This document shows positions 24,212 to 45,377 of a DNA stretch of 64,000 bases, one piece after another. The stretch lies in the sequence record PV796108.1; one strand, written 5' to 3'. The translations under genes and the position numbers were made by a program. Every line of letters starts with the position of its first letter. Within the stretch, counting starts at the first letter, position 1. Under the pieces are notes generated by a model. The model did not search any database. It saw only the letters and a program-made list of their open reading frames with translations, and had not been told where the DNA came from.

Positions 24212-27200
24212 TTACTCTTTTTTCTGACCATAATTATCAAGGTCTTCGTAGCTTGTTGTGAACTTACGGTCACTAGCTTCTGTGTCAGCCATGAAGTTCA
24301 TGAATCCACCGACTGCTGCAAAGAATCCGTCGCCTGAGCCATCGAATCCTAGACCTTGTAAGAAGTTATCCATTGAGCCTTGTTTCGTATCACCAACAAC
24401 CATACCTTTATGACCATTAATACCAGCTGTAAACTCTTTACCTTGATGCATTAATGGCATCATCAGTACAGCTTGGTTCGTAGTCTTACTTCGTCTCCAC
24501 TTCTCGAATAAGCTTTCAACTAACCATCCAGCAGTTAAACTGAATATCCATCCAAGTGGTGTCCCTTTCGAAGCAAAGGTTCCGACCCCTTTAATAAACT
24601 TAGAACTTGATTTCATATCTTTCATTGCACCAGGCAATTTAGATGCAGTTAGAAGTGAACGAGCCGCTAACTTTTTCGTTCCTTTCATAATCTTACCATC
24701 CTTACCAGGTACTCCTCCAGATTTTAACCATTCCTGCGCCTTTTTGGAAACATTATCTGCTGCATTTTTTACACGTTCCCAAGCCTGTGCCTCATTCTTA
24801 CCTTCCTTACCTTTTGCTTTATAGTAAGAATCAATAGCCTTTTTCAGTTCATCTGTTTCAGGAGTTTCAGGAAGTGTACTTACAAGGTTCTTCATACTCT
24901 TCTCTACTATCCATCCACCAGCTGCTTTACCTTTGGTCATTAATGTTCGACCTGTTGCACTATTAGCGAACTTACGAGTTGCCGCATTACCAGCACGCAT
25001 TCCCATAACAGTTGCTCCAGCTAACATCCCGATTGATGCCCACCAGTTTGAATGAGCTAACATTGCTTTGTCATCAATAACAACAACTGCATCAGGAGTT
25101 ACACTTGAAATGAAACCAGTCTCATGAGAGAAGTGATGAACAACAGCTTCAACTCCGATGTTACCGTTCATATCAGAAACTGAATCTGACATGTAAATCA
25201 TATCGTGTGGTTTCAATGTAGGTGTTCCAAGGATTGTGATACGTCCTTTATACATATCTTTCATGTAATCACGAACAGTACTTGCAGAGTAGTAAAGAGC
25301 TTGCTTCTCTGTAGTAAACTTATCCCAACCTGGAATTGTACGAGAGATTAATGGAAGGTCAACAACGGCTGTACGTTGCATTGAGAAGTCGATATCGTAG
25401 TCTGCATACACTGGAGGTGTTGGTTTGCCGCCGTAGTTACCAACAACAATTGTGTACATACCATCAGAAGATGCTTTGATTTGGTTAGAGATAATATCCA
25501 TGCCATCATCAATATAATGAAGTTGACAATATGGACGTCTATGCTCTGTATCAAGCGTACGATCCCATGACTTCGTTTTCTCGTTATAAGCATAGGTACT
25601 ATCATAACGATATGCCATATTCCAATATGGTTTTCCGAAGAACAATGTAGAGCGTGTTTCGAATGGATGAACCGCAGCAATATAGTCAGGGAAGCAATAA
25701 GAAATGTTTGTAGCTACATCCCAGATTGTTTGATTATATAGAGGCATCAAGATGTTGTCCTCGTCACCGCCTTGGAATTTAAGAATGAATCCATCCCACT
25801 TCATAGGAATACGAGTACCATCTTCATAAATCCATTGGCTAAATGTTTGAAGCCCGTTTGCAGAGTAAATGTTTTGAGCAGCCTCTCCATAGTTTTCATT
25901 GAAGAACTTGAAGTTAGCATCTGGTGTTCTATCGCCTGGACGACCAAAGTGAGCCACCCCTAATGGATTGTCACGGAAGAATCTATTCTCACTGGCTACG
26001 TTAATTACGTCTTTTGCCCATGCACCTTTAGATGTTAATAACTTACAGATAATGTCTCGTGGTTCTTGAGCATTAAATAGTTTCGCTGTCTTATCGTCAG
26101 GGTCACCAGAGATTACGCTTGTTAATTCTAGTCCGTCACCTTGAGCAACGATAGTGATAATGTCGTTCGTATCCATCTCTGTAATCTTACCGTTGAATAC
26201 AGTTGGTAATCTTCGTACAGATGAGCCATAACCCATTCGCAAGTGAATACGAGCACCAACTTCTAACATCATACTGTTCAATAAATCTGAACGAGCATCT
26301 AGTACTGCATCACTTGGATTGTCTAGTACTAAGTTATCCCAGAAGCTATATGCAAAGCTATCATACATTTCACTTGTTGGTCGTGCTGTTAAGTTACTGT
26401 ATACGTTTGTCATCGAGATAACAGCTGTATCTGCAACTTGTTTTCTACTTCTATGAACATCAATAGATTGGATTGCGTTGAATCCGTAGAAGTTATCCCA
26501 TAGACGATAAGAACCCATCCAACGTCCTTCATCAATAATGAAGAATTGGAACGTAGGGAAAGCACGACATAAGCGACCTCTCATATCATATGACAACATA
26601 TTGTGAGACATTTGAGAGAATGCCTCTTCAGGAGATTGCTGGAATAGTAGACGATTGTATTCCTCATCTTTGATGTCTTCTACCTTTTGTTGGTTTTCAT
26701 AGTTCTTCGATTCTTGAGATTTACCATCTCCGAAAACTTGGTCCCATAAAGAGCCATCTCCACCAAATGTTTTACTCCATCCTAAAGCAAGAAGGTCAGT
26801 TGCCCATTTACCAATTAGCATGTTTGTATTACCGCCAGTCGGAATCTTAACTTGGTCTAGGTAACCTTTTAACTTTCCGTCCTTATGCATCTTCATGTAT
26901 GATTCGTAAATCTTCTTTACTTCACTAGATGATTTCTTCTTCATCTCACTCAGCAATGCCTTTGCCTTTTCCTTGCCGATAACATCCTCAATGATTTTAG
27001 AATCCTCTAAGTCTTTGATTAAAGCATCCTTATCACTTGTTGCTACGTTGACACTGTGTGAAGATTTACCATCAACTAGCTTCATGATGTCAGGGTCTAC
27101 AACTTGTCGTGGAGAACGGTAACGGTTCTTATCTCCGTTATATAAAGACTTCCACACACTCATGATAGAAGGGAATGCACCTTCTTTGATGCTGTCTTTT

Positions 27201-30200
27201 TTCAGCTCACCAATATAGAAAGCAGATAACATGTAATCCCAAGCACGGTATTCAAACTCTTTCTCTTTTGAATCTCTAGCTTTTACATAGAATTTATAGA
27301 TATCATCTACGATTACCTTCAACTGATATTTCCAATCCCATAGGAATCGTTGTGCATCATCTACACTACTTGTAAAGTTTGGAATGTCTACCTTACCGAT
27401 ACCACCGAATGTACCGTTCACATAAGGCTTGCTCATAGAATCGAAGCCATTCCATTTACTTTGGTGATGGAAGAATGCTTTTAAATAGTTGGCAATACGA
27501 GCACGAGTGGTTGGCATAAACTCTTTGTAGTACATACCATTTGTTTTATCTTGTCCAAGTAAAGCAACTAAGTTATCAGTAGGCTTCTTACCTTCACGAT
27601 ATTGTGTATACAGTTTCAAGTGGTCTTCTGGTTCAGCATACGTAAGTTTTGTATGTCCACCTTCAGCTTTGTTTTTGTCATTGTATACGTTGTTGTTTTT
27701 CACCCAACGTCCATCAATTAAAGAGTAAAGTTCTTTATAGAACTCGATTGGTTTTGGAACAACATTCTGTCTCCACTTTGTAAAATCAGCTTCAGTTGAA
27801 CCATAGCCCCATGTCTTCCACTTATCTAATGGAGGAGGAGTATCTATATTCTTTTTCTCTTTTAACCATGTAGCAACTTCAGCATTTGGCTTACCAGTAC
27901 CTTTTGCACCACCAGTAGAGTCTGTTGCATTCTCCGCAGCCTTTTCAGAGTTTGCACCTTGATTATCCTCAGCCCAGTTAAAGACATAAGGAACATAAGG
28001 AGTCTTCTTCTCAAGCGCTTCAATTACATGCATGTTCTCTTTATCTACATCCATTGGGTCTGTAGAAGTAATGTTGGATGACATGTGAACACCAGAAGAG
28101 TCACTGAACTTCATCTCTTTACGTTGTTCTAATTGCTTCTTAACTTCTCCACGGAATGTCCATTTTGTAGAAGCATAGAAGTCAGGGTCAACGTAAACAC
28201 CACCTGGTTTGTTTTTGTACTCTTTAATACCAGCTCCAGTTTTCTCAATGACATCATTCAGCTCTTTGTAAGTTGGTAATTCTAAGTCAGGGTATACTTC
28301 CATTTGGTCCATCTTGTATTCAATGATTGCATCCTGTAGTTTGTAATCTACTGTAGATGAATGTAATTGATCTCGGTCATTTCCATCGAATGCACTCATG
28401 CCTTTTAGTTCTTCTTGGCGACGTTGTGTTTTGTTGAATGCTACTAGAACCATTTCACCTTGAAATCGACCTGGGAATCCTGGCACCGTATTAATATTCA
28501 ATGTTTCAATCATGACACTCTTCACACCGAATAGTTTCATTAATTGATTCTCTATTCCTAAGAACCCAGAAGAAATACCTACACGATAATGACGAGCGAA
28601 CTCATCAATCTTATCTACTAAAGTACGTAGTTTCATTACACCATCTTCTGTTAATTCAAGGTCTAGTTTTACGGCAACATCTTGAGAACCAAGGAACTGC
28701 ATCGTAGGTGATTCACCTGTACGAGTTTGAGCAGAACTGAAAATGTTTTCGTACATAACTTGCATAGAAGTAACCAACATATCCTTTTCAGGAATTGTAT
28801 AGTCAATCATAGATAGTTTTGATTCCGTTACATATACAATGTCACTTAACTTGTTATAACGGTCAATCTCAGTCATTGCCATTTGTTCTGCACGACGACC
28901 TCTTTCAACGATACTCTTCAATGCACCTAAAGATGTTTCTGTTACATAGAAGTAACCAATAGCATCTTTCTCGGACTTCGGTTTTACCCAAAGGTTTTTA
29001 TGCTTCTTCAGTTCCTCACCATTCGGGATAGACCATAAGAAGATTTTAAATGTATCTTTCTTACGGAAGTATCCAGGAAGCTCTGAACCTTCTTCTGCAT
29101 CTACTGGTAATTTACCACGCATGATGTCATGCACTTCACTATCATGTGGAGCAAAGAATTCCGTATCATCAAATACAGCTCTAGCACTTCTATTGTTGTA
29201 CATATCTTGGAACACTTGATGACCTTCTACTAAATCATCAGGGTCTTTAATATCACCATTCTTTTTATGGCGTTGATACTTATCGTACTGTTCAAGAACA
29301 AGTGATGCTTTTTTACCATCAGCAATAACTTTACCTAGTTCACTCTTCTTCGCATCAATCTCCATTCTCATTACATTGATTGGCTTCATTTCACGAAGAG
29401 CAATGATTGCTTCTGCTCGTTGTTCTAATTCAGCTTCATCTGCATGAGAGAAAGAAATCTTATTTGTTAATTGACCAGCGATAGGTTCTAGGAATGTATG
29501 AGCATCATTAGCTGGTTTAGATAAACTACGTTGGTAGTACCATCTCATTAATGGATAGTTAATCGCATCATGCAAACTAACTTCTTGAGGCATGTAAGCT
29601 TCAGAGTTGAATTTCGCTAATGTTAAGTTAGCCATAATAGAATGAGGGAATCCTGGCACTGTCTCTACTGATAAGTTCATTAATGCCACATCATGAATAT
29701 CTAAGATAGTATTAATGTATGCATTATCAATAGGAAGGAAAGGCATCTTCTGGAACTGAGCAATCAATTGGCGTAAACCATCCATTGTGTACTCCATACC
29801 TTCTGGTGTTTTCCAAGGCGTACCATTAATCGCTTCTAAGTCATGGAAATATAATTGAAGATTAATAGATGTACTTGAGAAACCAGTCTTCGTTAAAATA
29901 CTTCCTTTTGTACGAAGTGTCTTAACACGTTCTGTATGAGAAGTTCTGTTCACTTGGATTCCTAATGGAGGAACGGTAAGTAATACATCACCAATACGAA
30001 CACGATGTTGGTTTTGTAGGTCTCCCATCTTTTCTAATCTATCATCTAGTGGTTCTAAGAAGTCTAGTGTATTGTCATACACTTCATCATATTTGATTTT
30101 AACTTCTGACAAGTCCGATTTCTCTTCGTTGTTCTTACCACTTTCTTTAAAGTAGTCGTCTAGCTTCTCGCCAACTGTTCCGCTATCAGGCATATCCTTT

Positions 30201-31171
30201 AATAGTCCAAGGTCTTTATACCATTTCATTACATCGAAACGAATATAGCCTTCGTCATTTACGAACTTCTCATATGGCATACCAAGAGGAGCAGGTGCAT
30301 ATAATGCAGAAGGTTTAGCAAGTAAGCTTTTATTCATATTGATTGCGCTAGGTATTTTGTCACCTTTAAGTACTTCTGATTTATTTACATGTGTTTTGTA
30401 AACAACAGCAACATAACGACCATATACATCTTTACGTGGTTCATGGTTTTCGATTCTATCTACATCGACTACGACAGCCCCAGAACCACTTAACATGTTG
30501 TTCATGTAGTCTCTTGCTTCTTCACCGATCTTGAATGCTTGTTCTTTTGTTACTTTATAGCGAGACATGTACCCAGCATTTCGAGTTGTACCAGATGCTT
30601 CGCCGTGGTCTTCTGTCTCAGGTGCTTGTACACCTACATAACGAATATTAATGCGTTCGCCTTTTTTAACATGTATCCCAATCCATTTACCCGTATCATA
30701 AACAACACCAGAGATTGTATCACCATCTTTTACTTTTACATCTTCTAATACAATGATACCTTCTGATACTGGAGTTTCTTCTGGCGGAGCTGCTAAAGCA
30801 CGAGCCATTAATCTAGGAGCAAATGCAGGTTCTGCTTTCTTATCTTCCCCTATTCTTCCTTGCTCATGAAATGGAGAGTTGGATTCAACAGGTAGCTTTC
30901 TAACTACGTGTGCATGTACATCTATATTCGAAACCTTACCACCTAGTTTTCTTGCGAATCCGTGGCTTCCTTCTGTTTTATTAAATAGAACGGAGATAGG
31001 ATATACTTTATTTTTTGCGGCTACTGTTGCTAAGTATTCGGACAATCTATTTCCAACAGAAACTTCGTTATATCTAAAACGAACTCTTTCTCCATCTACA
31101 TCCAGAGTAAGAAGCCAGAATGACTCTGGCTTCTCTTTCTGAACAGATAGGAGTCTCATTTCATACAACAT
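24212..31171 (-). CDS. ~2319-aa baseplate hub. Domains: N-terminal SNase/thermonuclease, two tube-like domains, degenerate SLT, gp27/gpD-like hub, hydrophobic C-terminus
   Basis: Start moved to ATG 31171 (AAAGGAGG RBS). DGDT at 30716-30727, IRYVGVQAPE and DVYGRYVAVVY give the SNase. IQSIDVHRSRKQVADTAVISMTN...RIHLRMGYG...VFNGKITE gives the hub. Confidence 0.8.
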   Translation of the reverse strand: MLYEMRLLSVQKEKPESFWLLTLDVDGERVRFRYNEVSVGNRLSEYLATVAAKNKVYPISVLFNKTEGSHGFARKLGGKVSNIDVHAHVVRKLPVESNSPFHEQGRIGEDKKAEPAFAPRLMARALAAPPEETPVSEGIIVLEDVKVKDGDTISGVVYDTGKWIGIHVKKGERINIRYVGVQAPETEDHGEASGTTRNAGYMSRYKVTKEQAFKIGEEARDYMNNMLSGSGAVVVDVDRIENHEPRKDVYGRYVAVVYKTHVNKSEVLKGDKIPSAINMNKSLLAKPSALYAPAPLGMPYEKFVNDEGYIRFDVMKWYKDLGLLKDMPDSGTVGEKLDDYFKESGKNNEEKSDLSEVKIKYDEVYDNTLDFLEPLDDRLEKMGDLQNQHRVRIGDVLLTVPPLGIQVNRTSHTERVKTLRTKGSILTKTGFSSTSINLQLYFHDLEAINGTPWKTPEGMEYTMDGLRQLIAQFQKMPFLPIDNAYINTILDIHDVALMNLSVETVPGFPHSIMANLTLAKFNSEAYMPQEVSLHDAINYPLMRWYYQRSLSKPANDAHTFLEPIAGQLTNKISFSHADEAELEQRAEAIIALREMKPINVMRMEIDAKKSELGKVIADGKKASLVLEQYDKYQRHKKNGDIKDPDDLVEGHQVFQDMYNNRSARAVFDDTEFFAPHDSEVHDIMRGKLPVDAEEGSELPGYFRKKDTFKIFLWSIPNGEELKKHKNLWVKPKSEKDAIGYFYVTETSLGALKSIVERGRRAEQMAMTEIDRYNKLSDIVYVTESKLSMIDYTIPEKDMLVTSMQVMYENIFSSAQTRTGESPTMQFLGSQDVAVKLDLELTEDGVMKLRTLVDKIDEFARHYRVGISSGFLGIENQLMKLFGVKSVMIETLNINTVPGFPGRFQGEMVLVAFNKTQRRQEELKGMSAFDGNDRDQLHSSTVDYKLQDAIIEYKMDQMEVYPDLELPTYKELNDVIEKTGAGIKEYKNKPGGVYVDPDFYASTKWTFRGEVKKQLEQRKEMKFSDSSGVHMSSNITSTDPMDVDKENMHVIEALEKKTPYVPYVFNWAEDNQGANSEKAAENATDSTGGAKGTGKPNAEVATWLKEKKNIDTPPPLDKWKTWGYGSTEADFTKWRQNVVPKPIEFYKELYSLIDGRWVKNNNVYNDKNKAEGGHTKLTYAEPEDHLKLYTQYREGKKPTDNLVALLGQDKTNGMYYKEFMPTTRARIANYLKAFFHHQSKWNGFDSMSKPYVNGTFGGIGKVDIPNFTSSVDDAQRFLWDWKYQLKVIVDDIYKFYVKARDSKEKEFEYRAWDYMLSAFYIGELKKDSIKEGAFPSIMSVWKSLYNGDKNRYRSPRQVVDPDIMKLVDGKSSHSVNVATSDKDALIKDLEDSKIIEDVIGKEKAKALLSEMKKKSSSEVKKIYESYMKMHKDGKLKGYLDQVKIPTGGNTNMLIGKWATDLLALGWSKTFGGDGSLWDQVFGDGKSQESKNYENQQKVEDIKDEEYNRLLFQQSPEEAFSQMSHNMLSYDMRGRLCRAFPTFQFFIIDEGRWMGSYRLWDNFYGFNAIQSIDVHRSRKQVADTAVISMTNVYSNLTARPTSEMYDSFAYSFWDNLVLDNPSDAVLDARSDLLNSMMLEVGARIHLRMGYGSSVRRLPTVFNGKITEMDTNDIITIVAQGDGLELTSVISGDPDDKTAKLFNAQEPRDIICKLLTSKGAWAKDVINVASENRFFRDNPLGVAHFGRPGDRTPDANFKFFNENYGEAAQNIYSANGLQTFSQWIYEDGTRIPMKWDGFILKFQGGDEDNILMPLYNQTIWDVATNISYCFPDYIAAVHPFETRSTLFFGKPYWNMAYRYDSTYAYNEKTKSWDRTLDTEHRRPYCQLHYIDDGMDIISNQIKASSDGMYTIVVGNYGGKPTPPVYADYDIDFSMQRTAVVDLPLISRTIPGWDKFTTEKQALYYSASTVRDYMKDMYKGRITILGTPTLKPHDMIYMSDSVSDMNGNIGVEAVVHHFSHETGFISSVTPDAVVVIDDKAMLAHSNWWASIGMLAGATVMGMRAGNAATRKFANSATGRTLMTKGKAAGGWIVEKSMKNLVSTLPETPETDELKKAIDSYYKAKGKEGKNEAQAWERVKNAADNVSKKAQEWLKSGGVPGKDGKIMKGTKKLAARSLLTASKLPGAMKDMKSSSKFIKGVGTFASKGTPLGWIFSLTAGWLVESLFEKWRRSKTTNQAVLMMPLMHQGKEFTAGINGHKGMVVGDTKQGSMDNFLQGLGFDGSGDGFFAAVGGFMNFMADTEASDRKFTTSYEDLDNYGQKKE

Positions 31172-31184: not shown

Positions 31185-34100
31185 TTAATATGTGAACCCT
31201 TTACCCATGACGTTTGCAAACTGTGTCTGCATCCATTCATTGTCTAACTTTTGGGTGTTATCATTTACATTCATGTTCATGTTAAGTTGAGCGCTCGTTT
31301 GATTGGACAACTCTTGGTGAACAAGTTTAGAAATATCTTGTTGAGACATTCCTTTTGCATCCTTTGCTCTAATCGAGATGTTGATGTTTTCATTCGACAT
31401 TACACGAGCAGTTGGGCCAGAAGATACTTGGACAGGAGGTGGCGGTGGTGGCGCCATTTCAGTCTGCTCTTGGAATGCTTCTGGTGTTGGACCACTTCTC
31501 ATTAAAGCTGAAGCTGCCCACATAGCACCAAATCCAATTGCTCCTCCTATCATACCTGGTCCCATCTTATGTGCTAGACCAGACATTTTTTCACCTACGG
31601 CTTCTGTTGCTCGAACAATACCTTTGTCTGCACCAATCATTTCTGTAAGAGTATTCTTACTTAGATGCGGTGTTTCAGTTATCGTATCAGCGAGAGAATC
31701 TTTTATTGCTCTGTCTCTAAACGAGAATCGCTCGGAGATGAGGTTTTCAAAGTTCTGCACGCCTTCATCATATATCTTTTTAAATTGAGGATTGTTTGCA
31801 GCGATGTTGTCTAAGTGAGGAGTTGGAACTGATTCGTATTTACCACCAGCTACAATGTTAGAAACAATTTCTGTATCCTTCGTACCACCAGATTGCATAC
31901 CCTTCAGATGAGGATTCTCAGTGAATGAATTTCCAGATAATGAATACAGGTCTTGTAATTGGTCTAAGTGTCTATCAAGACCGTAGTGGTTCATACTTTC
32001 GCCTGGATTACTTGTTTTGAAGATACCAAGTATATCATTGGCTTTTCGAATCTTCTCTACACCAACAGAGTCAGGTCGGATAACACCTTCCTTTAACATC
32101 TCAATCGCTTGGTAATGAGTTTGCATACGGCGTTCGACTTCAGTCATAACTGCATCTGCACCATGATGCTCCATTACTTTAGCAGCGTATTGGCTTTCAT
32201 CACTCGTTAATGATTTGCCCCAGCTCTTAACAATCTCTTCCGTTAAAGCACCGACACTAATCTTTTTAGAAGAAATAGAGTCCTGTGAAATCTTACTACT
32301 GAACTCTTCTAAAACATTCATAGCTTGGTATGCTTCGTCTTGAGACATCAAGCCTTTCTTAGCAAGAGCTTCATAAGTTGGGTTCGTTAGAGTTTGCATA
32401 CGTTGACGTAAGTTATCGAGTACCCCGATATCAGCTTTACCAGTACGAGCTAGTAAGCTTTCCATCTCATTGAGTCTAGTTGTTTTTGGACCCCAACCAG
32501 CTAACTCTCCAAGGTCTTGCGTCTTCTGAATGTCTCTTTGGATTTGCTCACCAACTGTAAGCTTTTCTGAGTTGTAATGCTTTAACTCATCTCCTGCCAT
32601 TTCAACAGCAGCTTGATTATAAAGTGGAACACTTCCTTGTTGAACCTCAGCCATTTCACCATGAATCGCACGAATGTCATCAATAGTATGATTCTTACTT
32701 GCTTTATAGTGGTTGAATACGGCGTTACCATTATCACCATCATGATCGGCTTTGAATACTTTTGCAGTACCAGCGCCAACATACATAACGTTTGATTCGA
32801 TTCTATCATCCACCAGATAACGAAGAACTCCATTGGTCTGTTTATTGATAGTCGGATAACGGTTCGTAAATCCATATAAACCATTTGTTTTTGCAATTTC
32901 AAGTGCTTCTTCACCCATACGTTCAGATTTAAACTGATTCGCTAAAGATTCGAGACGTTTTTTCTCTTGTCCTTTTGCTTTACCAGCTTGAGTCATTCGT
33001 TCATTGTACTCTGTAAGAATAGATTCATGACGCTTCGGAGCTAATGATTGAACGATGTCGCCTTCTGCACCTGCAATCATACGTTGCATTTGTTTCGGAC
33101 CGATTAATGCATCCCCTTCAGCCAATCCTTTCTCATGCATGTTAACCCCTTCAATGTGGAAACGACCAGACATATCCATCTTCGCAGAGTATTTATCTAG
33201 AAGTGTTCCTCCATGAGAACCAGTTACCATGTAATTCAGGTATGACTTGTATGCATCCACTGCTTGTTCAACAGCTTCTTTGTTCTCAATTGTAGGAGCA
33301 GCTTGATATGCTTTAATGTTTCTCCAGATACCAAGAGAACGTTTGTCTACTTCATTTGCCATCTCCAGTGCTTCTGGGCCAGTACCGATTTGCATCGTAC
33401 CAGGAGACATTAATCGAACGTACTTATCTTTAAACTGATGCTCACTATTACTTGGCATTTCTAGTAAGAATGTACCACCGTTTTTCTTCATAAGACTTCC
33501 GACAGTCTCATCAACACCTTCACCAAGTCCTTCGATTTGTAACTGCAAGCTTCTTGGGTCTGCAAGTGTCATTGCATAATTACCAAGTTTACCTTTCGTC
33601 ATCTCAGGGTCAGTAGCAACATTGAATTGTGGGTCACGGAATGCATGTTGAGAAATCTCTAGGTGACCATCTTTCATAACAGCTGTATGTGTACCATCTG
33701 GGTCTAAGTCAGTCATGATGTTTCCGCCTGTACGAATAACAATGTCACCATCTTGTACAACGCCTTGTTTTTGAAGAGTTGTGTTTTGGTGGTCATTGAT
33801 TGCTCGTAAGATACCAGACGTTTCTTCAGCTAGTGTCATTTCATTACTGCTGTTTTGAAGAGCAGAACGTGAGGAGATTTGTTGGCGAACGAACTTACCA
33901 ATAGTGTGGTCTTTACGATTTAAGATTTGGTCTGTACGATTGACAATGGCTTCTTGCTCTTTATATGTCCAACGTACTAAGCCAGACTTACCATCAGTAG
34001 ATACACCCATTTGGTCTTGCCATTTATGAAGGTCAGCAACTCGAAGTGTTAAGTTAACATTCTTTTCCTGACGATTAATTGGAGCAACATAATTGATAAC

Positions 34101-37100
34101 GCCAGCTTTAGCCGCAAGCTCTTCCAACATTTGAGATGATTGTTTTACGAAATCATACTCTTGTTGTAACCCATATACAGGCCCAGCGATTCGACCATGC
34201 TCTGAATTTAATACCAGCTTACCGACTGTTAAGTTGCTTCCTTGTACAGGCTCAAGTCTCATACCAATATCTGCATCTGGTATTTGGAAGATACGTTGTG
34301 TCATATCTTTAATATCTAATACGTATTTTTTAACGGCTTCATTCTTGAAGTCCATGTCAGAGTTTGTAATTAATCGGTTGGCTTCATCTACAGCTAATCG
34401 GACTTGACCTTCAATCTCCGTACCATGCATACCTTTATTGATATCACTTACAGTAACGATTGCTTTTGAATTTCCTACACCAAGTGCTTCAAAGATATCT
34501 CTATCGAAGAAGTTTGTTGTAATACGATGGTTGGCATCCGTTAAGAACTTACGTCCATTCTCTGTTTTCTCAATCATTTGAGTTTGCAGTTTACGAGTCT
34601 CTGGGTCATAACCTACAACATGGAATCCATCTCCCCATGCTTTTTCAGCTTGATAGTTTGTATTTTGACCAACACTTACTTGACCAATTGTTAATTTTCC
34701 ATGGTCAGCTTTACCTGGGTTATTCACACGACCACCAAGAATTGTTTCCAATTCAGTAGCGTTTTTCATTACATCCCCTTCAAGTCTCCATCCACCACTA
34801 TCAGTTCGAACAGAACGGAATCCATCTCTCTCCAAATCATTACCTTCAGCTTGTCTAAAGAAGTTTTCAATATCTTTGTGTAAGCTGTATCCACGTTGCA
34901 GAGTAAAGTTCTTCTCACGCTTCGTATCAAATACACTTTGTAATGACTTATCAATGATAGACATACCCTCAAATGTAGTCAGGTTCTTTTCAAATCCTTG
35001 ACCATATTTTCGAACTAGGTCTGCATATCCATCAGGATTGCTTTTTCTAAATGCATCCATTCGATCTTTAATGTCCATGTCTGTTAATTCAACAGCTTGA
35101 ACATTTAATCCTGTTAATTCTTTTTGTTTAACAACAGAACCATCAGGCATACGAATAGGAGCGCTTAAAGCTTCAGATGCAGTTGTTGTCGCAGAAGTTT
35201 GAATCATACGTTCAATCTCAACACTTGTATAGCCTTGTGCTTGTAATCGACTACGAATCTCTCTTTCTTCTAGTGGAATGTAGTTACGAGTTTTATTCAT
35301 TTGCTCACGGGCTAGGATATTGTAATGCCCAAATGCTTGATAAGCTTGCGATGTTTCTCTTGTACCGTAAATACCATTCAGTACTTGTTCACCACTCACG
35401 TTACCAGCATTTAAATACATGTTCTTTTCTCTAGATGCAAACTCTTGAATCGTACTATGGAAAGCACGTTGCTCTCTCATTCCTAAGTTCTCGAAGAATG
35501 AAGTATATGAACCAGAAGCCTTGTCTTTAATCTGTTGGTATTTGTTTTTTACGCCTAGTTCTTTTTCGAAACCATAACGTTGGTCATACCATGAATACCA
35601 TTCTTCAGCCCATCCACTTACATCTATCTTACTTCGAGCAGCACGTTGAGCTACCTGAGAACGCTTAGAGTCGTGCTTAGTAAGTTCTTTTGCATTTGTG
35701 TATGGATTATTATGTGAGAACTTTTCTGTCGCTTCACGAGCTTGTCTACGTAGTCTAGAGTGAGCTTCCTGTTCGTTACCTTTACGGATTAACTCTTTTG
35801 TAGAACCAGCACGACGAACTGCACCATCTACTAATTGTTCCAATGGAGTACCAAGAATGTCTTTACCATTCATACGCATTGCTTTTAGATAACCTGTTTT
35901 AGTAGAACCAGGCATCTGAACGTTCATGTTTTCATCCAGTAATGGAATTGGAACAGAAGCAACTTTTGCGTGTTCAATGATTTGGTTTGGCTGAAGACCC
36001 ATTACTTCTTTCATAACAGTTTCCTGCATAACAGCAAGCATGTATGTCTTCTTATGTCCATCATAGATTAATTGAGTAGCCATTCCCTCACCAGAATAAG
36101 AATGGATTAATTGTTTCACTACATCTTCAGCTTTCATCGTTTGAACGCCACGAGCAGTGTTACCACCACTGATTTGCATTAAACCATTTAAAGCTTCATC
36201 ATGTACTTGCAATGCCTTTTGGAATTTAGCGTCACTTAAATCTACAGCTTTACCTTGAGTCTTATGAGATGCTCTTCCGCTATCAATCCCTCGTCCGATG
36301 ATTTCATCTAAGATAGCAGGGTTTTTGTAAGCTTCAACTAAAGGCTTACGGATAGAACTTACATCTTTAATATCTAAGTTATGGTTTGCATAAGATGAGT
36401 TATGAGTATACTCTGCTCTCATCATACGAGCCATACTTTCAATAATCATGTACGGGCTTTCTCCGTGTTGTAGTTCAGAAACCTGACGCATTAGTTGAGA
36501 TTTCTCAGATGATGTTAACCCTGAAGCTCCTGGCCTACGAATATGATGCACAACATCTTGCAAACGTTTCTTTACAAGACCGATATCTACGCCACCATTC
36601 TTACTGATGTTCTCTTTAATATCTAATCCTTTTGTGATATAAGAACGGATATTACGAGCTGCTGTCGCATCAGTAGAAAGATCAATACGATGAGTTGTAT
36701 CACCAGGCAATTGTAATTCTAGGAATCCTTTACCGTTTGGCATTCTAATTCTTGACTCACCGCTACCATATCTCTCATCTAACTCTTGAGAAATTTTACG
36801 TAGAGCTACGTTCTGACTGAAAGGAGTAAATCCATTTACAGCTGGCATAGTAGAATCTAAACGTTGCATAGCAGTTTGCCATACTTTCTTCTCTTGCGTT
36901 AAACGTTTCTCCATTACAAGAAGGTCACGGTATTGAGAGTTTGGTAATCCAGTAGGAGTTCCGCCAACAGTACGTTGCACATTTGGATGATTCTGTACAT
37001 AGTCAGCAATATCTACTTTGCGGATTTCACCACGTTTAACTTTCTCTCTCCCTTCGTTTAATGCATCAAGAGCAGCGTACATACGCTCAAGCATCCAACG

Positions 37101-38732
37101 CCCACCACCAGATTCAGTAGTAGAGAACATCTTATCGTAAGTACGTCTTGCACGGTCTAATCCATATGCAGTTCTATTTCCAGAGTTAGGGTTTGCTAAA
37201 TGAGGAACTTCTTCTGAAGGTTTAAATACTTGATGGAATACACTTTGAAGGTCTGTCTCGCTATCTCTAGCAATGAAGTGAAATAAGTCTGTTTCTAAGT
37301 TACGAAGCAAGATACCACTTTGTTTATTCTCAGAGTTCTTTAATTTACCGCTGAATGTTTTTACAACCTCATACTCAGACTCTTTAGAGATTGGATTCAC
37401 ATTCCCTTTGTAAGCAGGGACCAACTGTTTCTTTTCTGGGTCCCAACGGAACACACCATCATTCGCTCCGCTTTCATATCCTGGCAACCCTGTCATAGAG
37501 AATAACTTATCTCCAGCTTTAATGGAGTTACTATTCCAAGTACCATTCATACGAGTACCAGCATCACTATTTACAATACCTTCTACATTTAATTTATCTA
37601 AGAATACTTTATTAGCTACGTCTACAGTTAAATCCGTATCTTGTAAAGCCATGTGAGTTGCTTGTGCGACTTCACCAGTCATTCCATAGAAGTTTGCTAG
37701 CGTTTGGTTCTTTAAGCCATGCTTAGAACTTAGGTCAGCGAATAAAGAGTTTGCAATAGATAATGTATCGAATGAGTCAGCCTTTTGAATATCAGAAGCT
37801 AAACGATTTAAAGCCATTCTAGTCTTTCTATCTTTCTTAGGTATGCTAGGAACTAACTGGTCTTTAATATAATCACGCATGAAGGGGATATCATATGTGT
37901 TAATATTTTGCCCACCTAGTTTTAATTCTTTTCCATTACGTAATGTATTCAAGAATTCTCTAGCTACTACATGCGGTTCTGTACCATGCTTTACAACATT
38001 CTCGAATCCACGTTTCGCCGCTTTGATTTGGTCATGTGTAAATAAAGTACCTTTCATAGCTTTTTGATCTTTGTTCTGTTTTAAGATGGTAGTCATGTCA
38101 CCATCTTTACGGAAGTATCCTTGTCCGAATGCATCATCTGCTCCGTATAGGATTAAGTCATTCACGGTACGTCTTTCATCATCAGACAAGTTAATGCCTG
38201 TGATATGGATTCCTTTTAGTTTTTCAAAGATATCCATTACATGCTTTTGTTCTTTCTCACCTGGCTTTACTAATAGAGAAAGAGCCTTATCTGTTTTACT
38301 AAATTGAAGTTTACCTGCGGCATCTCTTTCTACCTTTGTTTGACGGAAACCAAACTCTAGAGGTGAGTACCATTCTCCGCCATGAGTACCAATATTCTCA
38401 ATATCGAAGAACGTGAAGATATCTCCAGCCTTCATATTTTGAATCGTTTGGATTGACTTCTGAGCATGGGATTTCGTGCTTGTACTTGGGATATGGATAG
38501 ACTTAAACATATTCATTTGAGAATCAGCAGAGTTTGTCAATATCTTACCGTTGTAAGTAGCCGCTTTGAATAACTCATCAGCACCTGTTGTTCTTGGTTT
38601 CTTTTCTCGTTGAGACATTTGAGCAACAATGTATGATGGGTCAGGGTTAGTATTTTGTTTGATATAAGTATCATGAAGGGGGTCGTATTTAAACTGACCC
38701 CCATTTTTAATTCCCCCTTTATTTTCTTCCAT
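31185..38732 (-). CDS. 2515-aa putative virion single-chain two-barrel RNA polymerase with an N-terminal DEDDh 3'-5' exonuclease and a tape-measure-like C-terminus
   Basis: Exonuclease: FFDIE (D110/E112), GQNINTYD281, H360MALQD365. RNAP motifs in canonical order: TFEG(1255)MSII, GRK1395...R1403, LLDKYSAKMDMSGR, NR1958YPT, AD1996HD1998GD2000. Confidence 0.82.
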   Translation of the reverse strand: MEENKGGIKNGGQFKYDPLHDTYIKQNTNPDPSYIVAQMSQREKKPRTTGADELFKAATYNGKILTNSADSQMNMFKSIHIPSTSTKSHAQKSIQTIQNMKAGDIFTFFDIENIGTHGGEWYSPLEFGFRQTKVERDAAGKLQFSKTDKALSLLVKPGEKEQKHVMDIFEKLKGIHITGINLSDDERRTVNDLILYGADDAFGQGYFRKDGDMTTILKQNKDQKAMKGTLFTHDQIKAAKRGFENVVKHGTEPHVVAREFLNTLRNGKELKLGGQNINTYDIPFMRDYIKDQLVPSIPKKDRKTRMALNRLASDIQKADSFDTLSIANSLFADLSSKHGLKNQTLANFYGMTGEVAQATHMALQDTDLTVDVANKVFLDKLNVEGIVNSDAGTRMNGTWNSNSIKAGDKLFSMTGLPGYESGANDGVFRWDPEKKQLVPAYKGNVNPISKESEYEVVKTFSGKLKNSENKQSGILLRNLETDLFHFIARDSETDLQSVFHQVFKPSEEVPHLANPNSGNRTAYGLDRARRTYDKMFSTTESGGGRWMLERMYAALDALNEGREKVKRGEIRKVDIADYVQNHPNVQRTVGGTPTGLPNSQYRDLLVMEKRLTQEKKVWQTAMQRLDSTMPAVNGFTPFSQNVALRKISQELDERYGSGESRIRMPNGKGFLELQLPGDTTHRIDLSTDATAARNIRSYITKGLDIKENISKNGGVDIGLVKKRLQDVVHHIRRPGASGLTSSEKSQLMRQVSELQHGESPYMIIESMARMMRAEYTHNSSYANHNLDIKDVSSIRKPLVEAYKNPAILDEIIGRGIDSGRASHKTQGKAVDLSDAKFQKALQVHDEALNGLMQISGGNTARGVQTMKAEDVVKQLIHSYSGEGMATQLIYDGHKKTYMLAVMQETVMKEVMGLQPNQIIEHAKVASVPIPLLDENMNVQMPGSTKTGYLKAMRMNGKDILGTPLEQLVDGAVRRAGSTKELIRKGNEQEAHSRLRRQAREATEKFSHNNPYTNAKELTKHDSKRSQVAQRAARSKIDVSGWAEEWYSWYDQRYGFEKELGVKNKYQQIKDKASGSYTSFFENLGMREQRAFHSTIQEFASREKNMYLNAGNVSGEQVLNGIYGTRETSQAYQAFGHYNILAREQMNKTRNYIPLEEREIRSRLQAQGYTSVEIERMIQTSATTTASEALSAPIRMPDGSVVKQKELTGLNVQAVELTDMDIKDRMDAFRKSNPDGYADLVRKYGQGFEKNLTTFEGMSIIDKSLQSVFDTKREKNFTLQRGYSLHKDIENFFRQAEGNDLERDGFRSVRTDSGGWRLEGDVMKNATELETILGGRVNNPGKADHGKLTIGQVSVGQNTNYQAEKAWGDGFHVVGYDPETRKLQTQMIEKTENGRKFLTDANHRITTNFFDRDIFEALGVGNSKAIVTVSDINKGMHGTEIEGQVRLAVDEANRLITNSDMDFKNEAVKKYVLDIKDMTQRIFQIPDADIGMRLEPVQGSNLTVGKLVLNSEHGRIAGPVYGLQQEYDFVKQSSQMLEELAAKAGVINYVAPINRQEKNVNLTLRVADLHKWQDQMGVSTDGKSGLVRWTYKEQEAIVNRTDQILNRKDHTIGKFVRQQISSRSALQNSSNEMTLAEETSGILRAINDHQNTTLQKQGVVQDGDIVIRTGGNIMTDLDPDGTHTAVMKDGHLEISQHAFRDPQFNVATDPEMTKGKLGNYAMTLADPRSLQLQIEGLGEGVDETVGSLMKKNGGTFLLEMPSNSEHQFKDKYVRLMSPGTMQIGTGPEALEMANEVDKRSLGIWRNIKAYQAAPTIENKEAVEQAVDAYKSYLNYMVTGSHGGTLLDKYSAKMDMSGRFHIEGVNMHEKGLAEGDALIGPKQMQRMIAGAEGDIVQSLAPKRHESILTEYNERMTQAGKAKGQEKKRLESLANQFKSERMGEEALEIAKTNGLYGFTNRYPTINKQTNGVLRYLVDDRIESNVMYVGAGTAKVFKADHDGDNGNAVFNHYKASKNHTIDDIRAIHGEMAEVQQGSVPLYNQAAVEMAGDELKHYNSEKLTVGEQIQRDIQKTQDLGELAGWGPKTTRLNEMESLLARTGKADIGVLDNLRQRMQTLTNPTYEALAKKGLMSQDEAYQAMNVLEEFSSKISQDSISSKKISVGALTEEIVKSWGKSLTSDESQYAAKVMEHHGADAVMTEVERRMQTHYQAIEMLKEGVIRPDSVGVEKIRKANDILGIFKTSNPGESMNHYGLDRHLDQLQDLYSLSGNSFTENPHLKGMQSGGTKDTEIVSNIVAGGKYESVPTPHLDNIAANNPQFKKIYDEGVQNFENLISERFSFRDRAIKDSLADTITETPHLSKNTLTEMIGADKGIVRATEAVGEKMSGLAHKMGPGMIGGAIGFGAMWAASALMRSGPTPEAFQEQTEMAPPPPPPVQVSSGPTARVMSNENINISIRAKDAKGMSQQDISKLVHQELSNQTSAQLNMNMNVNDNTQKLDNEWMQTQFANVMGKGFTY

Positions 38733-38744: not shown

Positions 38745-41700
38745 TTAGTTAAATACTTTTGTCCAGTTCGTATTCAACTCCTGAATAATCTCACTGGTTC
38801 TATCTTTCATCATGTCGAAACCGACACTAATTATATTGTCATCTTTAGATGGTGAACGTTGAACGGTTACCTGTACATCATCTAGACCTGCTCCTCGAAG
38901 GACTTTCTCAATTCTAGATGAGTTAATCATGTCTCCCATTAAACGTGGTTGCATATCAACAGCATCAACGCCAGAAGCATCTGCTCTCGTTTCATCACTA
39001 CCCCAGAACCCAAACTCTGTAAGTTCCATACCTTCATTACGAACAACCTTTAATTTAATGTCATTCAATGCGGTATCTGCACGCCATCCTTCCCAGTTCT
39101 CACTAGGTAGATAATGCTTTTTAAAGTAGGATTCATTGCTCTCTACTTTATCCATCTTCATTCCCCACTTAGCTTGGAAGAAGCGACGTTCATTTTCAGG
39201 AACAAGTCGAAGGATTTCCTCCCTTTCTTCAGGAGCAGCCTTCATGAATTCTGCAAAGTACTCTCTATCTTTTTTCGGTAGAGAACGGAAAATTTTTGTC
39301 ATGTCACCATTTGGGTCAGCCCCGAATAATGTTGACTCATATTCCGCTTTGTATTGAAGAGCTAGTAACGTATGTGGCCCAATATCAACACTACTTCTAT
39401 CCTCACCAATCGTTTTCAGATTGTCACGGATACGTTTCAATTGGAACTCTGTAAGCTCATCATCACCATAACCCATTTTTTTCTGCATTGCCAATTGTTT
39501 TTTGTAAAGTTCTAGCGTTTTACGAGATTGCTTATTCTGCTTACCACGCTTACTATTCTCGTCCAGAAGTTCTTTTAAATCTACACCTTCTGTACGTTTC
39601 GCTTCTTCAGCTGCTTTCTCATATAAACCTTTGAACTTCATGTATTTCAAACGGTCAAAGTACTCGTTAACTTCCCTTTCCTTCTTACGTCTTTCTGGTA
39701 ACCAAACTTTATCATTGCCAGGAGTGTGTTCACTTAATACTCGAAGAGCCGCCGCCCCACCGCCTACTAAAGCACCAATCCATTTACCATAATATTTACC
39801 TTTACCTCGTCCAGCTAACCAACCAATACCATAACCTTGAGCACTTGCAATTAATGGATTACGAGAAGCCATTGTTTCAATCATAGGTTGTAACCATCCA
39901 GAGATAGGTTCTTCCCATGGTCTCCACGCTTTACCATAGACTTCAGTACGTTTGTATTGTTCTAATGGAGAACGAACTTGTAAGAACTTATCAGCGATAG
40001 GACCGATGATAGGTAAGCTTGGTAATAAGTCATGGCTCAAGAACTCCCATGCTTTACCGACAGTAATTTGGTCATTACTGAATAATGCTTGTGTAGCAGT
40101 TGCACTACCATCATCTTTCACACTTACTTTATTGTCTCCACCAATACCCATAATTCCACCGAAGGAACGATTCGCTAACATGTAGTTGACGTTCTGACCT
40201 TTTTGAGTCATGTAGAACGGCATACCTTCTTCACTATTTCCAGCGTATACAACAGCACGCATTGTATTCATCATGTCATCACGGACACGGAATAGTGGGT
40301 CGGCATCTAATCCTACTCGAATCTTCGCACCTTCATAAACGAACTGACGTAATAAAGACTGAGCTTCTTCATCATCTTGCTTGATAGATACACCAGCTAG
40401 TTTAATAGGGTTATTCGGGAACTCTTCTGTTAAGAATGTATTCTGGTCAAGAATCTTCGTAACAGTTACATCCTGCATATCAATGTCAGCATTTGTGAAT
40501 CGTTTATCAAAGAATTGGTATTTCTTTTTACGTTCACGTACTTGCGTCATTACTTCTTGATACTCATCATTCATCTCTTCTGTTAAACGACCATCTTGGT
40601 TCATTTGGGAAACAACACGTTTCCACATACGATACTGGTCAGAGTATGGAGCAACGTCAGCTAAGATACGGAATCTATCGAATGCACCGTACTTGCTTCC
40701 ATCTTCTTGAGAGAACTCATCTGGATGTAGCTTGTATAAAGATTCATAAGCTTCACCAGGAAGTCTCATTTCACCTTTACTTACTTTTACATAAGGGTCA
40801 CCGTATTTAAATGGTAGGAAGTATTCCGCACCAGGCATCCAGTCTGGCATTGTGTTTCGAATTGGATTGTAGTAATTTTTATTCGGGTCACGAGGAATAT
40901 AACGACGGAAAATCTCGGAGAATCCGCCACCAACCATATCGGCTCCACCTAGCTCCATATCCCAGAAGCTACGAGCCATACTATCCATACGAGAACTTGG
41001 CTCAAGTGTTAATCCACGTCCACCCTCTTGGAATCCAGATAGTGCTTTTGTACCGAAACCGTAGATACCAAGAACCTCAGATGCAGAGTAGAACATATCA
41101 CGAGCTACACCAGATGGATTACCAATCTCACCGATGTCAGCTAAGTCTGCTAGTGCTTCAGGGTCACGTAAGCTTTCTAATTGAGTTAAAGGTCTCATCT
41201 TAGATTGGTTAACTGCTGCTTGACCTCTCATGATGATACGTTGGTTAATTGCTGCTAAAGAAGCACTGGAGTAATCTCCTGTTCCAACCATTCGTTCAGT
41301 TCCTTCAATAGCAACGCCACCTTCAGAACTAGAACCACCACCAAGACCAATGGCACCGCCAGCACCTGAACCATAACCTTCTTCATATCCACCATCACCA
41401 GAAGGCATATCTTCATATACTTGAAGCCCACCAGCTGGCATTAACTGAATACTAGCACCTTCACTATATGCATCAAAACGTCTACTAGATGCTGCAATTA
41501 CTTCATCTTGATAACGTTCATGTTGTTCTTGTAAGTCTGCTCTTACAGTACGTGGAGAAATGATTCGCCCAATTGTATTATCTGCAAGTGGACCGACAAT
41601 AGGGAAGTCAGATAGGATTGTTCCACCTTTAATTGGGTAAGGTCTGTCATCTTCATGCTTCTTTTCTAGATAACTATGACCATTTAACATGTAAGTTAAT

Positions 41701-44700
41701 GGAGCTATTGGATTTGATAATGTAGGAATCCAAGTGTTTGCCCAGTAATCATTTGCACTTCCATAAAGCGTATCAGTGTATTCATAATCACTCTTCGCTT
41801 TACGATACCAGTTTGGTTCCCATCTCTCGATCTTTCCACCAGCCCAAGGAGTATTCGAACCTAGACCCCAGTAACGACCTTTACGTACAGCATCTTCACC
41901 AGATTCATAGTACTTATCTACTTCCTTTTCTGAACGAAAATCAGAGAATGCACCAAGTGTTAAGAAGTCGAATGCCTTTAAGAATGGTAGTTCACCTAAT
42001 TGCCCAGCACCTGCAAATGGAGCAGTTAGTTCTTTACCAATACGATTAATACCAAGTGCTTCTTTTACACCAGCTAAGTCGCCATGCATATTTACATACG
42101 TATCAGCTAGGCTATCACTTACTGTATCTCCAGTCATATCATCAAGGTACTCTAACTCTTTGTAAGCTACATAAGGAAGTAAGATACGTTTCCCTAATTG
42201 GTTTACAAGAATACTTTGCATACTACCTTTGTCTTTTTGAGCAAGACCTAATCCTACTTTGGATAACGCATTATCCATACGTTCAACACCGTAATAGAAG
42301 AATGTAGTAGCTGTCGTTACATCACCAAGGTTATTACGACCAGCGAATGGTTGCTTTACTACTTCTTTCGCACTATTAAGAAATGCAGATACAGAGTTAG
42401 AACCTTCTTCAATTAATTGATTGTAGTTCTCTTGCGCCCATCCAATTCCTTTTGCATCTCGCATGATACCGTAACCTGTTGTCGGTCCGAAATAGTTCGG
42501 CGGTTTCATACCTGGCCCAGTACTTGTTAATGGATTGAACTCTTTAATGCTCTGATGGATAGCTTGACCAAATACACTGTCATCGCCTTTCATCAACCCA
42601 GCGAATTCTTCTAATGCATCGTCACCATACGTATTACGATTACGATAAACATCTTTCCACCATGTACGCATTTTAGAAAGGACTTCCATATTACGTACTT
42701 CACCTAATGCATTTTTCTCTAAATCACCTTCTAGGATTGCATTTCGAACAAGACGGCTTGTACCCTCTGTTGTCATATTGACTTGGTGAATAGAGTGTTG
42801 TTGAATTAAACGTTTTGCATCATCTAAAATACCAACTAATTCTGTTTCACCTGTTTCTAATGCAGAAGCAAACTCAGGAAGAACAGCGCCGTTGTCACTA
42901 GAGATACGCTTATTCTTTAAGAAGCCTTGAGGGGAACGACTAAACTTCGTCCACATTTCATCTAATTGTTCAGCTAATGCCGTATTACCTTTAGAGATTT
43001 TACCATCGAACTCAGGAGAACCAATGGCTTGTCGTAAACGTCCTACTGCACCCATGATTTCATCTGTTGTATTTAATTTTGTTAAATCAATATCAACGTT
43101 CCCATATGCTTTCTTTACATGTGGGTTTAAGAAATCAATTGTTGTACTAGAGAAGTTTGTTGTCTTTTCATTAAATGAACTATATAGGTTCTTATAGATA
43201 CCTTCTACTTCATCTAAATCCTTGTACTGACCTTTCATCATTGTACGAACTTGGTTAATCTCCCAGTCAGGGTCTTTAAATTTCGTAAACATACTCTTGA
43301 TGTTAGCGAAGCTAGATGGGGATTCTTGCATTCCAAATCCAAAGAAGTTCTTTACTGGACCAACATCATCATAGTTTCGTACGTGTAAGTTAGCCATGCT
43401 TGCTGGCATACGGCTGAATACACCGAATCGTCTATCGGCTAGGTAGACACCCTCATCTACTTTATTCATATCATGCATACGGTATACATTTCCACCAACA
43501 AAGATATGGTCGTCTGCTAATGTACCAGCTGCCGCATCTCTATTATGAGCCGCAGGATGCTGTACTGTTCGTGCTCCTTGTAAGAACGGGTCAATATCTC
43601 CACGTTTTAATACGTAGCTTTTAGGAGCTTCACGAATTGTTTTAATACTAGAATAGTGAGCAAGGTCTAATGGGTTGAATCGTAGATATGGTAATTGCAC
43701 ATTGTCTTTTACAATATCAAGGAAGTTTAATCCGCCATCAATACTGTTACGCATATCAACAACGTTACCTGATTTATCTAAGAATAAGCCTGGGTCTACA
43801 TGTAGGTCTCCTAGTTCACTATCAGACTTCATATGGATACGGAAGTTGTTTGCTAAGTTCTTTGGAGCCATCTTGCTAGCTTTTTCTAATGGAACTAAAA
43901 AGTCTGAACTGTCTTGGTCAATCAAACCTCTGTTTAATGTTTCCTTTAATGTCAGTGGTTTTAAACCTCGGCGTTGAGCAGCTTCCATCCATTTACCATT
44001 CTTGTCAACTGAGTGGTCATCCTTGAATGCTTTTACACGGAGGTCACGATATTCTTTGTAGTTCTTTTTCGCAACATCCTTTACATTCTTATCCTTCTTA
44101 ACCGCTGTCATCGTTTGGTAAACTGTCTCTGCTGTTTTCTTACGTTCTAACTCATCAACAAAGTCTAATGCATTACTGATGTTATTCTTTTTCGCATTCT
44201 CTTTTGAATGCATTTTTAATAACTCGTCTACCTTTTTAAGAGACGGAGCTTCATAGAATAAGTCATCACGTTTTTGACGAAGGACATTTTCTAGTCCGCC
44301 TTCCTTCATTCTCTCAGGGAGAACAGAACTTAGTCGTTTCATTGTCTCTTCAAACTGAGTAGAACGTACAAAGTCTTTACGTTCCTTTTGAAGACCCTTC
44401 ATCATAGACAGATATTCATTTTGAATCTTCGTTGGTTTTCCACCAAGAGGAGTTCGTGCCATACGCATTCTCTCTTCTTGCAGGTCTTTAAATGTACGAG
44501 TAAAACGATTATCGAATCTATCCTTATTTCTCATATGGAATAGAGGATTCTTTTGATCTAATGCATGGTCTAATGATTTTAAATATGAACCTACTTCACC
44601 CATTGCATTGCCTACAGGAGTATTGCGGGCTGACATTTTAGCAGCTTGAATAGCGGCTCCTCTCATAGCCATACTAGATTCATGTGTAACTACCTTGATT

Positions 44701-45359: not shown

Positions 45360-45377
45360 TGTGTTCTCCTCCCAAAT

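Follow-up and report, generated by a model that had tools for sequence, protein, structure and literature searches.

Does a giant protein encoded among the tail genes of a Bacillus myovirus contain an RNA polymerase, and could such an enzyme be delivered into the host by the phage particle? The question is raised by a 64,000-nucleotide stretch of sequence record PV796108.1 (hereafter the window), which belongs to Bacillus phage Edson (233.8 kb, host B. cereus; 100% identity) and is 90% identical to phage vB_BceM_WH1 (WH1). The gene concerned, GAKEdson_0920 (31185..38732), is one uninterrupted open reading frame (ORF) encoding a protein of 2,515 amino acids (aa), which is labelled 'hypothetical protein' in the Edson record; like all other features located below by window position, it lies on the minus strand (-). 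The central 1,100 residues of this protein are predicted, from modelling and sequence comparison, to form a catalytically intact single-chain two-barrel RNA polymerase. That a Bacillus myovirus carries such an enzyme within a giant protein of its tail module had been proposed in a first-pass annotation, and the proposal was borne out in silico by the conserved DxDGD motif and by a structural model. The modelled segment of this two-barrel polymerase module (aa 1100-2200; 32133..35435) is supported by the AlphaFold model, by fold matches in the PDB, and by 80 homologous clusters.

The homologous family was assembled by searches of different depth. Word-based protein searching identified four homologues, with identity down to 25%, and a second search of this kind added one further protein. 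By using a profile of aa 1100-2200 in an exhaustive search of 1.84 billion representatives, 80 homologous clusters were detected, and no cellular RpoB or RpoC was found among the matches of this search. Most cluster proteins are giants of ~2.2-2.6k aa with the matching region at ~1100-2150, and the shorter profile matches (~400-1,900 aa) could represent incomplete pieces of proteins of this size. Nearly all of the ~80 clusters (50% identity level) are metagenomic, and three are from isolated Bacillus phages. A tblastn search of 50,697 phage genomes recovered Edson, WH1, and KLEB27-3 only, and scans of IMG/VR and GTDB genomes with tool-chosen patterns gave no relatives.

All ten motif strings that the first-pass annotation had quoted are present in the protein, exactly once each and at or within a few bases of where it had placed them, and its residue numbers (K1395, R1403, and D1996/D1998/D2000) were correct when recomputed on the 2,515-aa ORF. 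The conservation of these motifs was counted in a hidden Markov model alignment of 83 sequences, in which the denominators vary with coverage per site. The polymerase module opens with a conserved motif (aa 1133-1154; 35271..35336), in which G1135, E1143, K1147, and N1150 occur in nearly all covering sequences; it comprises AFGHYNILAREQM (aa 1133-1145; 35298-35336) and, at its end, YIPL (35271-35282). ELTGLNVQAV (35091-35120) and the TFEG motif in the region of aa 1255-1256, TFEGMSIIDKSL (34941-34976), follow. Position 1255 is always acidic (D in 34 and E in 27 of 61 sequences) and is adjacent to the conserved G1256, and it is a candidate for the beta-type metal-B acidic residue. The beta-type basic pair K1395...R1403 is located in GRKFLTDANHR (aa 1393-1403; 34524-34556) on predicted beta-strands (strands at model residues 282-310), with the same spacing as Rpb2 K979/K987. 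The 8-residue spacing of this pair had been pointed out beforehand, and the pair is kept in the family, with K1395 in 61/61 sequences and a basic residue, mostly arginine, at position 1403 (R in 53/61, K in 7/61).

The beta'-type barrel would start at the SAKMDMSGR region, LLDKYSAKMDMSGR (33162-33203), in which S1855 and G1856 are conserved. Its catalytic core (32733..32864), to which Pfam RNA_pol_Rpb1_2 aligns, extends from NRYPT (aa 1957-1961; 32850-32864) to DHDGD (aa 1996-2000), the latter being preceded by alanine in the quoted string ADHDGD (aa 1995-2000; 32733-32750). The NRxPT motif is kept across the family (R1958 in 80/81 and P1960 in 80/80 sequences). Loss of DxDGD in homologues had been named in advance as a finding that would speak against a polymerase; D1996, D1998, G1999, and D2000 were each found in 81/81 sequences. 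Further downstream, a 40-residue predicted helix (aa 2086-2125; 32358..32477), which includes IGVLDN (32412-32429) and carries the near-invariant R2096, G2103, and N2107, is a bridge-helix candidate, and SQDSISSKK (32262-32288), in which Q2150, I2153, S2154, and K2156 are invariant where aligned, is a candidate for the trigger-loop region. Both assignments are plausible, with invariant residues (G2103, N2107, Q2150, and K2156 without exception where aligned) on long predicted helices.

It has been reported by Ruprich-Robert and Thuriaux that eight residues are invariant across all two-barrel polymerases (PMC2919709), including Rpb1 R446/P448, Rpb2 K979/K987 (8 apart), and Rpb2 D837. The conserved residues of the present family appear to correspond to these eight, the second basic residue being mostly Arg and position 1255 being the candidate for the acidic one. 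The sequence also contains the pattern [RK]xPx{20,100}DxDxD, which served as the screen of Chaban et al. (PMC10770324, Supplementary Data 4), with 35 residues between RxP and D1996. The motifs exceed chance, given that the catalytic positions hardly vary, or do not vary at all, among the 83 aligned sequences despite overall identity down to ~25%.

Structure prediction provides the second line of evidence. The first AlphaFold model, based on a 5-sequence alignment, was poor, with a predicted local distance difference test score (pLDDT) of 43, and the model of aa 1100-2200 from a 28-sequence alignment reached a mean pLDDT of 82.5 and a predicted template-modelling score (pTM) of 0.76. When this model was compared with the PDB by Foldseek, the top 50 matches were all RNA polymerase large subunits (beta' or beta/Rpb2). 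Most of these are beta' chains (~270-290 columns, E-value ~1e-4, probability 1.00), and the phage AR9 beta'-like subunit as well as the beta/Rpb2 chains 3po2_B, 9dvs_C, 8r6s_C, and 8wa1_B are also among them; the matches, including those to beta chains, were listed without aligned ranges. The search for two barrels by AlphaFold and Foldseek, which the first-pass annotation had suggested, has in this way yielded a model that matches both beta' and beta/Rpb2 chains. Predicted strands carry K1395/R1403, SAKMDMSGR, NRYPT, and DHDGD, and the modelled 1,100 residues are globular and of mixed alpha/beta type. Two double-psi beta-barrels are predicted within one chain, the beta-like barrel first and the beta'-like barrel second.

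A comparison with BFVD gave a similar picture. The independently predicted WH1 orthologue superposes on the model with a template-modelling (TM) score of 0.80, and many viral RNA polymerases come after it in the list. A metagenomic siphovirus 'minor tail protein' (A0A8S5SD80_1) was also matched, over 1,127 columns and the whole model (E-value 1e-18, TM score 0.48, 12% identity). Polymerase-like giants of tail modules may be more widely spread than the Edson-type family.

At the level of sequence families, the window protein alone gave no match in single-sequence Pfam, PHROGs, and PDB sequence searches. Across 17 members, Pfam RNA_pol_Rpb1_2 (PF00623) was the sole recurring family, found in 6 of them over the NRxPT...DxDGD region. 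The best homologue reached 25.4 bits and was the one member above the gathering score (25.3), and the window's own segment had an E-value of 0.077. No match to Rpb1/Rpb2 domains besides Rpb1 domain 2 was obtained, and no polymerase was significant in profile searches against PDB sequences, the best match being the phiKZ beta'-like subunit at an E-value of 1.9. Owing to the PF00623 link, the conserved motifs, and the PDB matches to beta' chains, the beta' barrel is supported by both sequence and model.

The giant protein has further parts on both sides of the polymerase module. Conserved residues and weak profile matches suggest an N-terminal DEDDh (RNase T/DnaQ-like) exonuclease-like domain at ~aa 90-400 (37533..38465). 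Its signature, with the elements D-x-E, (N)x4D, and H-x4-D in this order, is formed by D110, E112, N276, D281, H360, and D365, each of them found in 63-64 of 64 sequences. Profile matches of this region to Pfam RNase_T (PF00929) were found below threshold in two homologues (one at 21.9 bits against a cut-off of 24), and weak PDB profile matches included Exonuclease I at an E-value of 0.04 and a family-B polymerase exonuclease domain. The literature searched, including that on known virion RNA polymerases, contained no example of a DEDDh domain fused to a two-barrel RNA polymerase. The following region (aa 401-1099; 35436..37532) is conserved, with an occupancy of 0.8-0.99 across 65 full-length homologues, and has no Pfam or PDB match. 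At the other end, the C-terminal module (aa 2390-2515; 31188..31565) contains a Gly/Ala-rich hydrophobic segment, a poly-proline run of seven residues, and a conserved end of ~70 aa. No other part of the giant protein is as well conserved as its last 125 residues, and this hydrophobic and proline-rich module may be an anchor or a membrane element.

The genomic position of the gene is highly regular. In transcription order, the capsid, sheath, and tube genes are followed by two small chaperone-position genes and three giant genes, of which the polymerase gene is the second, and then by SLT and NlpC/P60 lysins and the baseplate genes. The two small genes (173 and 161 aa; 44838..45905) occupy the tail-assembly-chaperone position and are labelled 'tail chaperonin' in WH1. 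Directly after them lies giant protein 1 (38745..44822), the upstream neighbour of the polymerase gene, with 2,025 aa, no cysteine, and no family match. The downstream neighbour, giant protein 3 (24212..31171; 2,319 aa as annotated), combines a staphylococcal-nuclease (SNase) domain near its N-terminus (aa 198-287; Pfam SNase E-value 9e-6) with a lysin/baseplate-hub region, so that a second nuclease-like domain is encoded in the tail module. The order of tube gene, two chaperones, giant 1, polymerase gene, giant 3, lysins, and baseplate genes is common to Edson, WH1, KLEB27-3, and distant metagenomic members, and the three-giant layout is also kept in a 229-kb Logan contig, a 241-kb NCBI contig, and a JGI contig. 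In every case, the polymerase gene has the tail chaperones on one side and the baseplate hub on the other. The WH1 orthologue, gp095 (94% identical to the Edson giant), is labelled 'virion structural protein', and the orthologue in the GenBank record of a second relative is labelled 'structural protein'.

Several other features of this gene block were observed. The longest ORF of giant 3 begins at 31240 and would share 56 nucleotides with the end of the polymerase gene, and its GenBank start (31171) lies 14 nucleotides past the polymerase-gene stop. Paralogy among the three giants was considered and rejected after comparison. The giant-1 gene is continuous in Edson (38745-44822), and in the 229-kb Logan contig (L005 6860-7850) and KLEB27-3 (L003 16745-17841) it is interrupted by a 211-aa ORF, which splits the protein into parts of ~1,340 and 672 aa. 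Weak matches to the group I intron family RF00028 (22 bits, under the gathering score) lie on both sides of this ORF in the Logan contig. The giant-1 counterpart of a distant family member (L013 597-7730) has Hint/intein-splicing Pfam matches, which suggest an intein there.

The same layout is present in phage 0305phi8-36, a distant relative (sheath identity 32%), in which the middle giant, gp146 (L010 16624-24237), has 2,537 aa. The annotation of gp146 reads 'hypothetical tape measure protein', and mass spectrometry has detected this protein in virions. Homology between gp146 and the Edson protein was examined and rejected by comparison; a weak local match (hhalign probability 8%) covers an exonuclease-I-like 'D-I-E-T' stretch near residue 1220 of gp146. 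With regard to composition, cysteine is absent from all 4,540 residues of giants 1 and 2, compared with a share of 0.5% in the other window proteins (P ~1e-10); gp145 and gp146 of 0305phi8-36 likewise have none, and the hub protein gp147 has 10. Its absence from giants 1 and 2 is in keeping with polypeptides that have to travel along a narrow channel.

Taken as a whole, the favoured explanation is a tail-delivered, virion-packaged polymerase that starts phage transcription, to which a probability of roughly 0.6 is assigned. The predicted fold, the catalytic residues, the family, and the synteny were observed in silico. Packaging is suggested by the GenBank labels of two relatives together with synteny and analogy, and the ejection step, the template, the timing, and what the exonuclease does are likewise inferred. 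The mechanism is proposed because of the analogy with gp96 of phage P23-45, whose tape-measure-fused virion polymerase is the precedent (PMC10770324). The giant protein would be built into the virion together with the tail and ejection apparatus and would exit from it at the same time as the DNA or earlier, while the conserved hydrophobic, proline-rich C-terminus might hold it at the tail tip or at a membrane channel. The polymerase could then transcribe the first-entering phage genes with no need for the host enzyme, and the N-terminal DEDDh exonuclease-like domain could act on 3' ends of nucleic acids in the same step. Later in infection, phage sigma factors would redirect the host polymerase.

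The transcription genes of WH1 were inspected with this explanation in mind. Two sigma factors are encoded by WH1, whose annotation lists no polymerase, and in the ~86% of its record that was examined, no other long ORF with DxDGD was found except an ATPase. An 822-aa protein (L008 22025-24493) suspected as a second polymerase was rejected, as it has no DxDxD; its gene, apparently monocistronic and located in the early-looking arm, encodes a Rho_N/SAP-like N-terminus (Pfam E-value 6e-6). The early-looking region shows no enrichment of sigma-70-like sites (44 observed versus 64 +/- 9 expected), which is weak side evidence for the proposed mechanism.

On the other side, several points weigh against a delivered two-barrel polymerase. 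The beta-like barrel is predicted from the model, the Foldseek matches to beta chains, and the conserved K/R pair, and a Pfam search of its segment in 7 members gave no Rpb2/beta match. The Foldseek E-values are modest (~1e-4), and the matches cover ~270-590 aligned columns of 1,101. Virion content, expression, and activity are predictions for Edson and its relatives, and a folded enzyme of 1,100 residues would have to unfold to pass the tail tube. No phage-specific promoter motif emerged from crude searches of 29 intergenic gaps in the early-looking region of WH1, which used exact k-mers and 9-mers with one mismatch and recovered just ribosome-binding sites and T-runs. Moreover, gp146, the virion protein of 0305phi8-36, is a positional counterpart only, with no DxDxD and no detectable homology to the Edson-type family.

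A more elaborate form of the delivered polymerase is put forward tentatively. It would represent a family in which a two-barrel enzyme and a DEDDh 3'-5' exonuclease are covalently linked, the latter serving either the editing or processing of RNA 3' ends or the preparation of the template, and in which the C-terminal anchor tethers the machine at the DNA-entry channel, so that transcription could start as the genome enters. This version is held to be rather less than probable.

Among the alternatives, the one that survives best sees the protein as a tail tape measure, alone or as a component of a composite ruler, whose main function concerns tail length or the channel and which carries the polymerase as a fused passenger, like the protein of P23-45. 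The gene belongs to the tape-measure region that comes after the pair of chaperone-position genes, the 0305phi8-36 counterpart with its tape-measure annotation is of near-equal length, the family length is strikingly constant (~2.4-2.55k aa), the hydrophobic C-terminal segment is conserved, and P23-45 offers a precedent. However, it is giant 1 that directly follows the chaperones, the polymerase gene being second; no tape-measure family is matched, and the modelled residues form a globular alpha/beta body and not an extended helical ruler. A tape-measure function is a real possibility, although one that falls well short of being probable.

It is also conceivable that the polymerase is real and delivered but does not make early mRNA, acting instead in pulling in the 234-kb genome by transcription-coupled translocation, in the synthesis of replication primers, or in RNA-templated synthesis, with the exonuclease perhaps trimming host or phage nucleic acids. 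Two-barrel enzymes include RNA-dependent or dual-template polymerases, such as QDE-1 (PMC9508822), and archaeal PolD, and polymerase-assisted injection was raised for 0305phi8-36 by Hardies et al. The failure to find an early promoter motif and the linked DEDDh exonuclease, which the known virion RNA polymerases in the literature searched do not have, point in the same direction. Nevertheless, DNA-dependent RNA polymerases head the list of structural matches, Pfam connects the family with Rpb1 domain 2 and not with an RNA-dependent RNA polymerase (RdRP), and the characterised virion-borne phage polymerases in the literature searched all transcribe early genes, which makes such other roles unlikely.

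A non-packaged polymerase, expressed late, acting in the producing cell, and merely sited among tail genes, would agree with the 'hypothetical protein' label in Edson. It appears quite improbable in view of the position between chaperones and baseplate hub, which is strictly kept in distant members, the structural labels in two independent records, and the absence of cysteine shared with giant 1; furthermore, a late-only polymerase could not start infection, and the sigma factors serve later stages. Finally, it can hardly be maintained that the motifs arose by chance or are remnants of a decayed enzyme in a purely structural protein, since the conservation counts already contradict this: the window protein alone had no significant Pfam or PDB sequence match and the first, shallow model was poor, but the catalytic positions are invariant in 60-81 sequences at ~25% overall identity, the deeper model is confident and matches RNA polymerases only, and one homologue reaches the Pfam gathering score.

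As for novelty, the predicted polymerase in the Edson giant is a variation on a type already known, and the family itself is unannotated in public records. None of the source names retrieved for family members says RNA polymerase, and full-text literature searches yielded no description of an Edson-type polymerase family. In the jumbo-phage survey of Iyer et al., polymerases were reported only in phiKZ-like phages and two YonO-bearing group 3 phages (PMC7824862); this survey is older than the Edson-type genomes. WH1 is absent from the survey table of PMC10770324, which is uninformative about prior detection because that table covers only viruses with at least two polymerases. To date, phage-delivered two-barrel RNA polymerases are known from few lineages, namely phiKZ-like phages, crAss-like phages, and P23-45. 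If the delivered polymerase is real, a populated family of ~80 clusters from jumbo myoviruses with Gram-positive hosts would be added, and the link of tail and ejection proteins to transcription would be extended to contractile-tailed phages. It may also explain how infection starts in these phages, and a natural fusion of polymerase and exonuclease would provide material for studying minimal RNA polymerases and their evolution.

A close known parallel in architecture is gp96 of the Thermus siphovirus P23-45 (PMC10770324). It too is a single-chain two-barrel polymerase with DxDGD inside a giant tail-module protein, with a sequence that is nearly unrecognisable; the host polymerase is used later, and hydrophobic segments occur elsewhere in the polymerase polypeptide. 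In contrast, the polymerase of gp96 is N-terminal in a 5,002-aa tape measure with a metallopeptidase domain, whereas that of Edson is central (aa 1100-2200 of 2,515) and preceded by the DEDDh exonuclease-like domain, and Edson is a jumbo myovirus of a Gram-positive Bacillus host. PDB sequence searches at E-values up to 10 gave no gp96 chain, no peptidase domain was found, and, unlike P23-45, WH1 has no second, non-virion polymerase in the parts examined. The likeness to the gp96-type tape-measure-fused polymerase would thus be one of architecture only.

The first-pass annotation had also likened the motifs to those of QDE-1, YonO, and crAss-type enzymes; as a statement of family membership, this did not hold. 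PF05183, the Pfam RdRP family, matched neither the window protein nor 17 homologues, and gp66, gp96, and QDE-1 chains were seen in neither the PDB sequence searches nor the top-50 fold matches. The gp66 protein of crAss-like phage phi14:2, a virion protein of ~2,000 aa from the structural gene block with a single-chain two-barrel polymerase that is delivered for early transcription (described in PMC10770324), resembles what is proposed for the Edson giant. However, its source is a podovirus-like phage of Bacteroidetes, no crAss-like genome was among the tblastn matches, the solved gp66 structure is outside the top-50 fold matches, and the crAss profile matches in the survey table of PMC10770324 have DFDID or DDDPD where the Edson-type family has DxDGD. 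YonO of SPbeta and gp99 of 0305phi8-36, both from Bacillus phages, likewise combine the beta-like and then the beta'-like barrel in one chain. On the other hand, these QDE-1-type RdRP relatives are stand-alone, non-virion proteins of ~800-1,200 aa that match PF05183; in 0305phi8-36, gp99 is encoded on the other genome arm. Homology to gp99 was rejected, the hhalign probability being 0.1%. By sequence, the Edson-type protein is outside the detectable YonO, crAss gp66, and P23-45 gp96 families and looks like a separate family.

The multisubunit enzymes, whose beta' and beta chains (Rpb1/Rpb2, those of AR9 and phiKZ included) provide the best structural matches and, through RNA_pol_Rpb1_2, the sole sequence-family link, share with the Edson protein the spacing of the basic pair and that of RxP...DxDxD. 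As this only link is to the canonical Rpb1/beta' domain 2, it gives a hint, and no more, of a multisubunit-derived clade. Whereas the multisubunit polymerases are built from separate subunits, the Edson enzyme is predicted to be a single chain, carried inside a tail giant together with exonuclease-like and anchor-like C-terminal modules.

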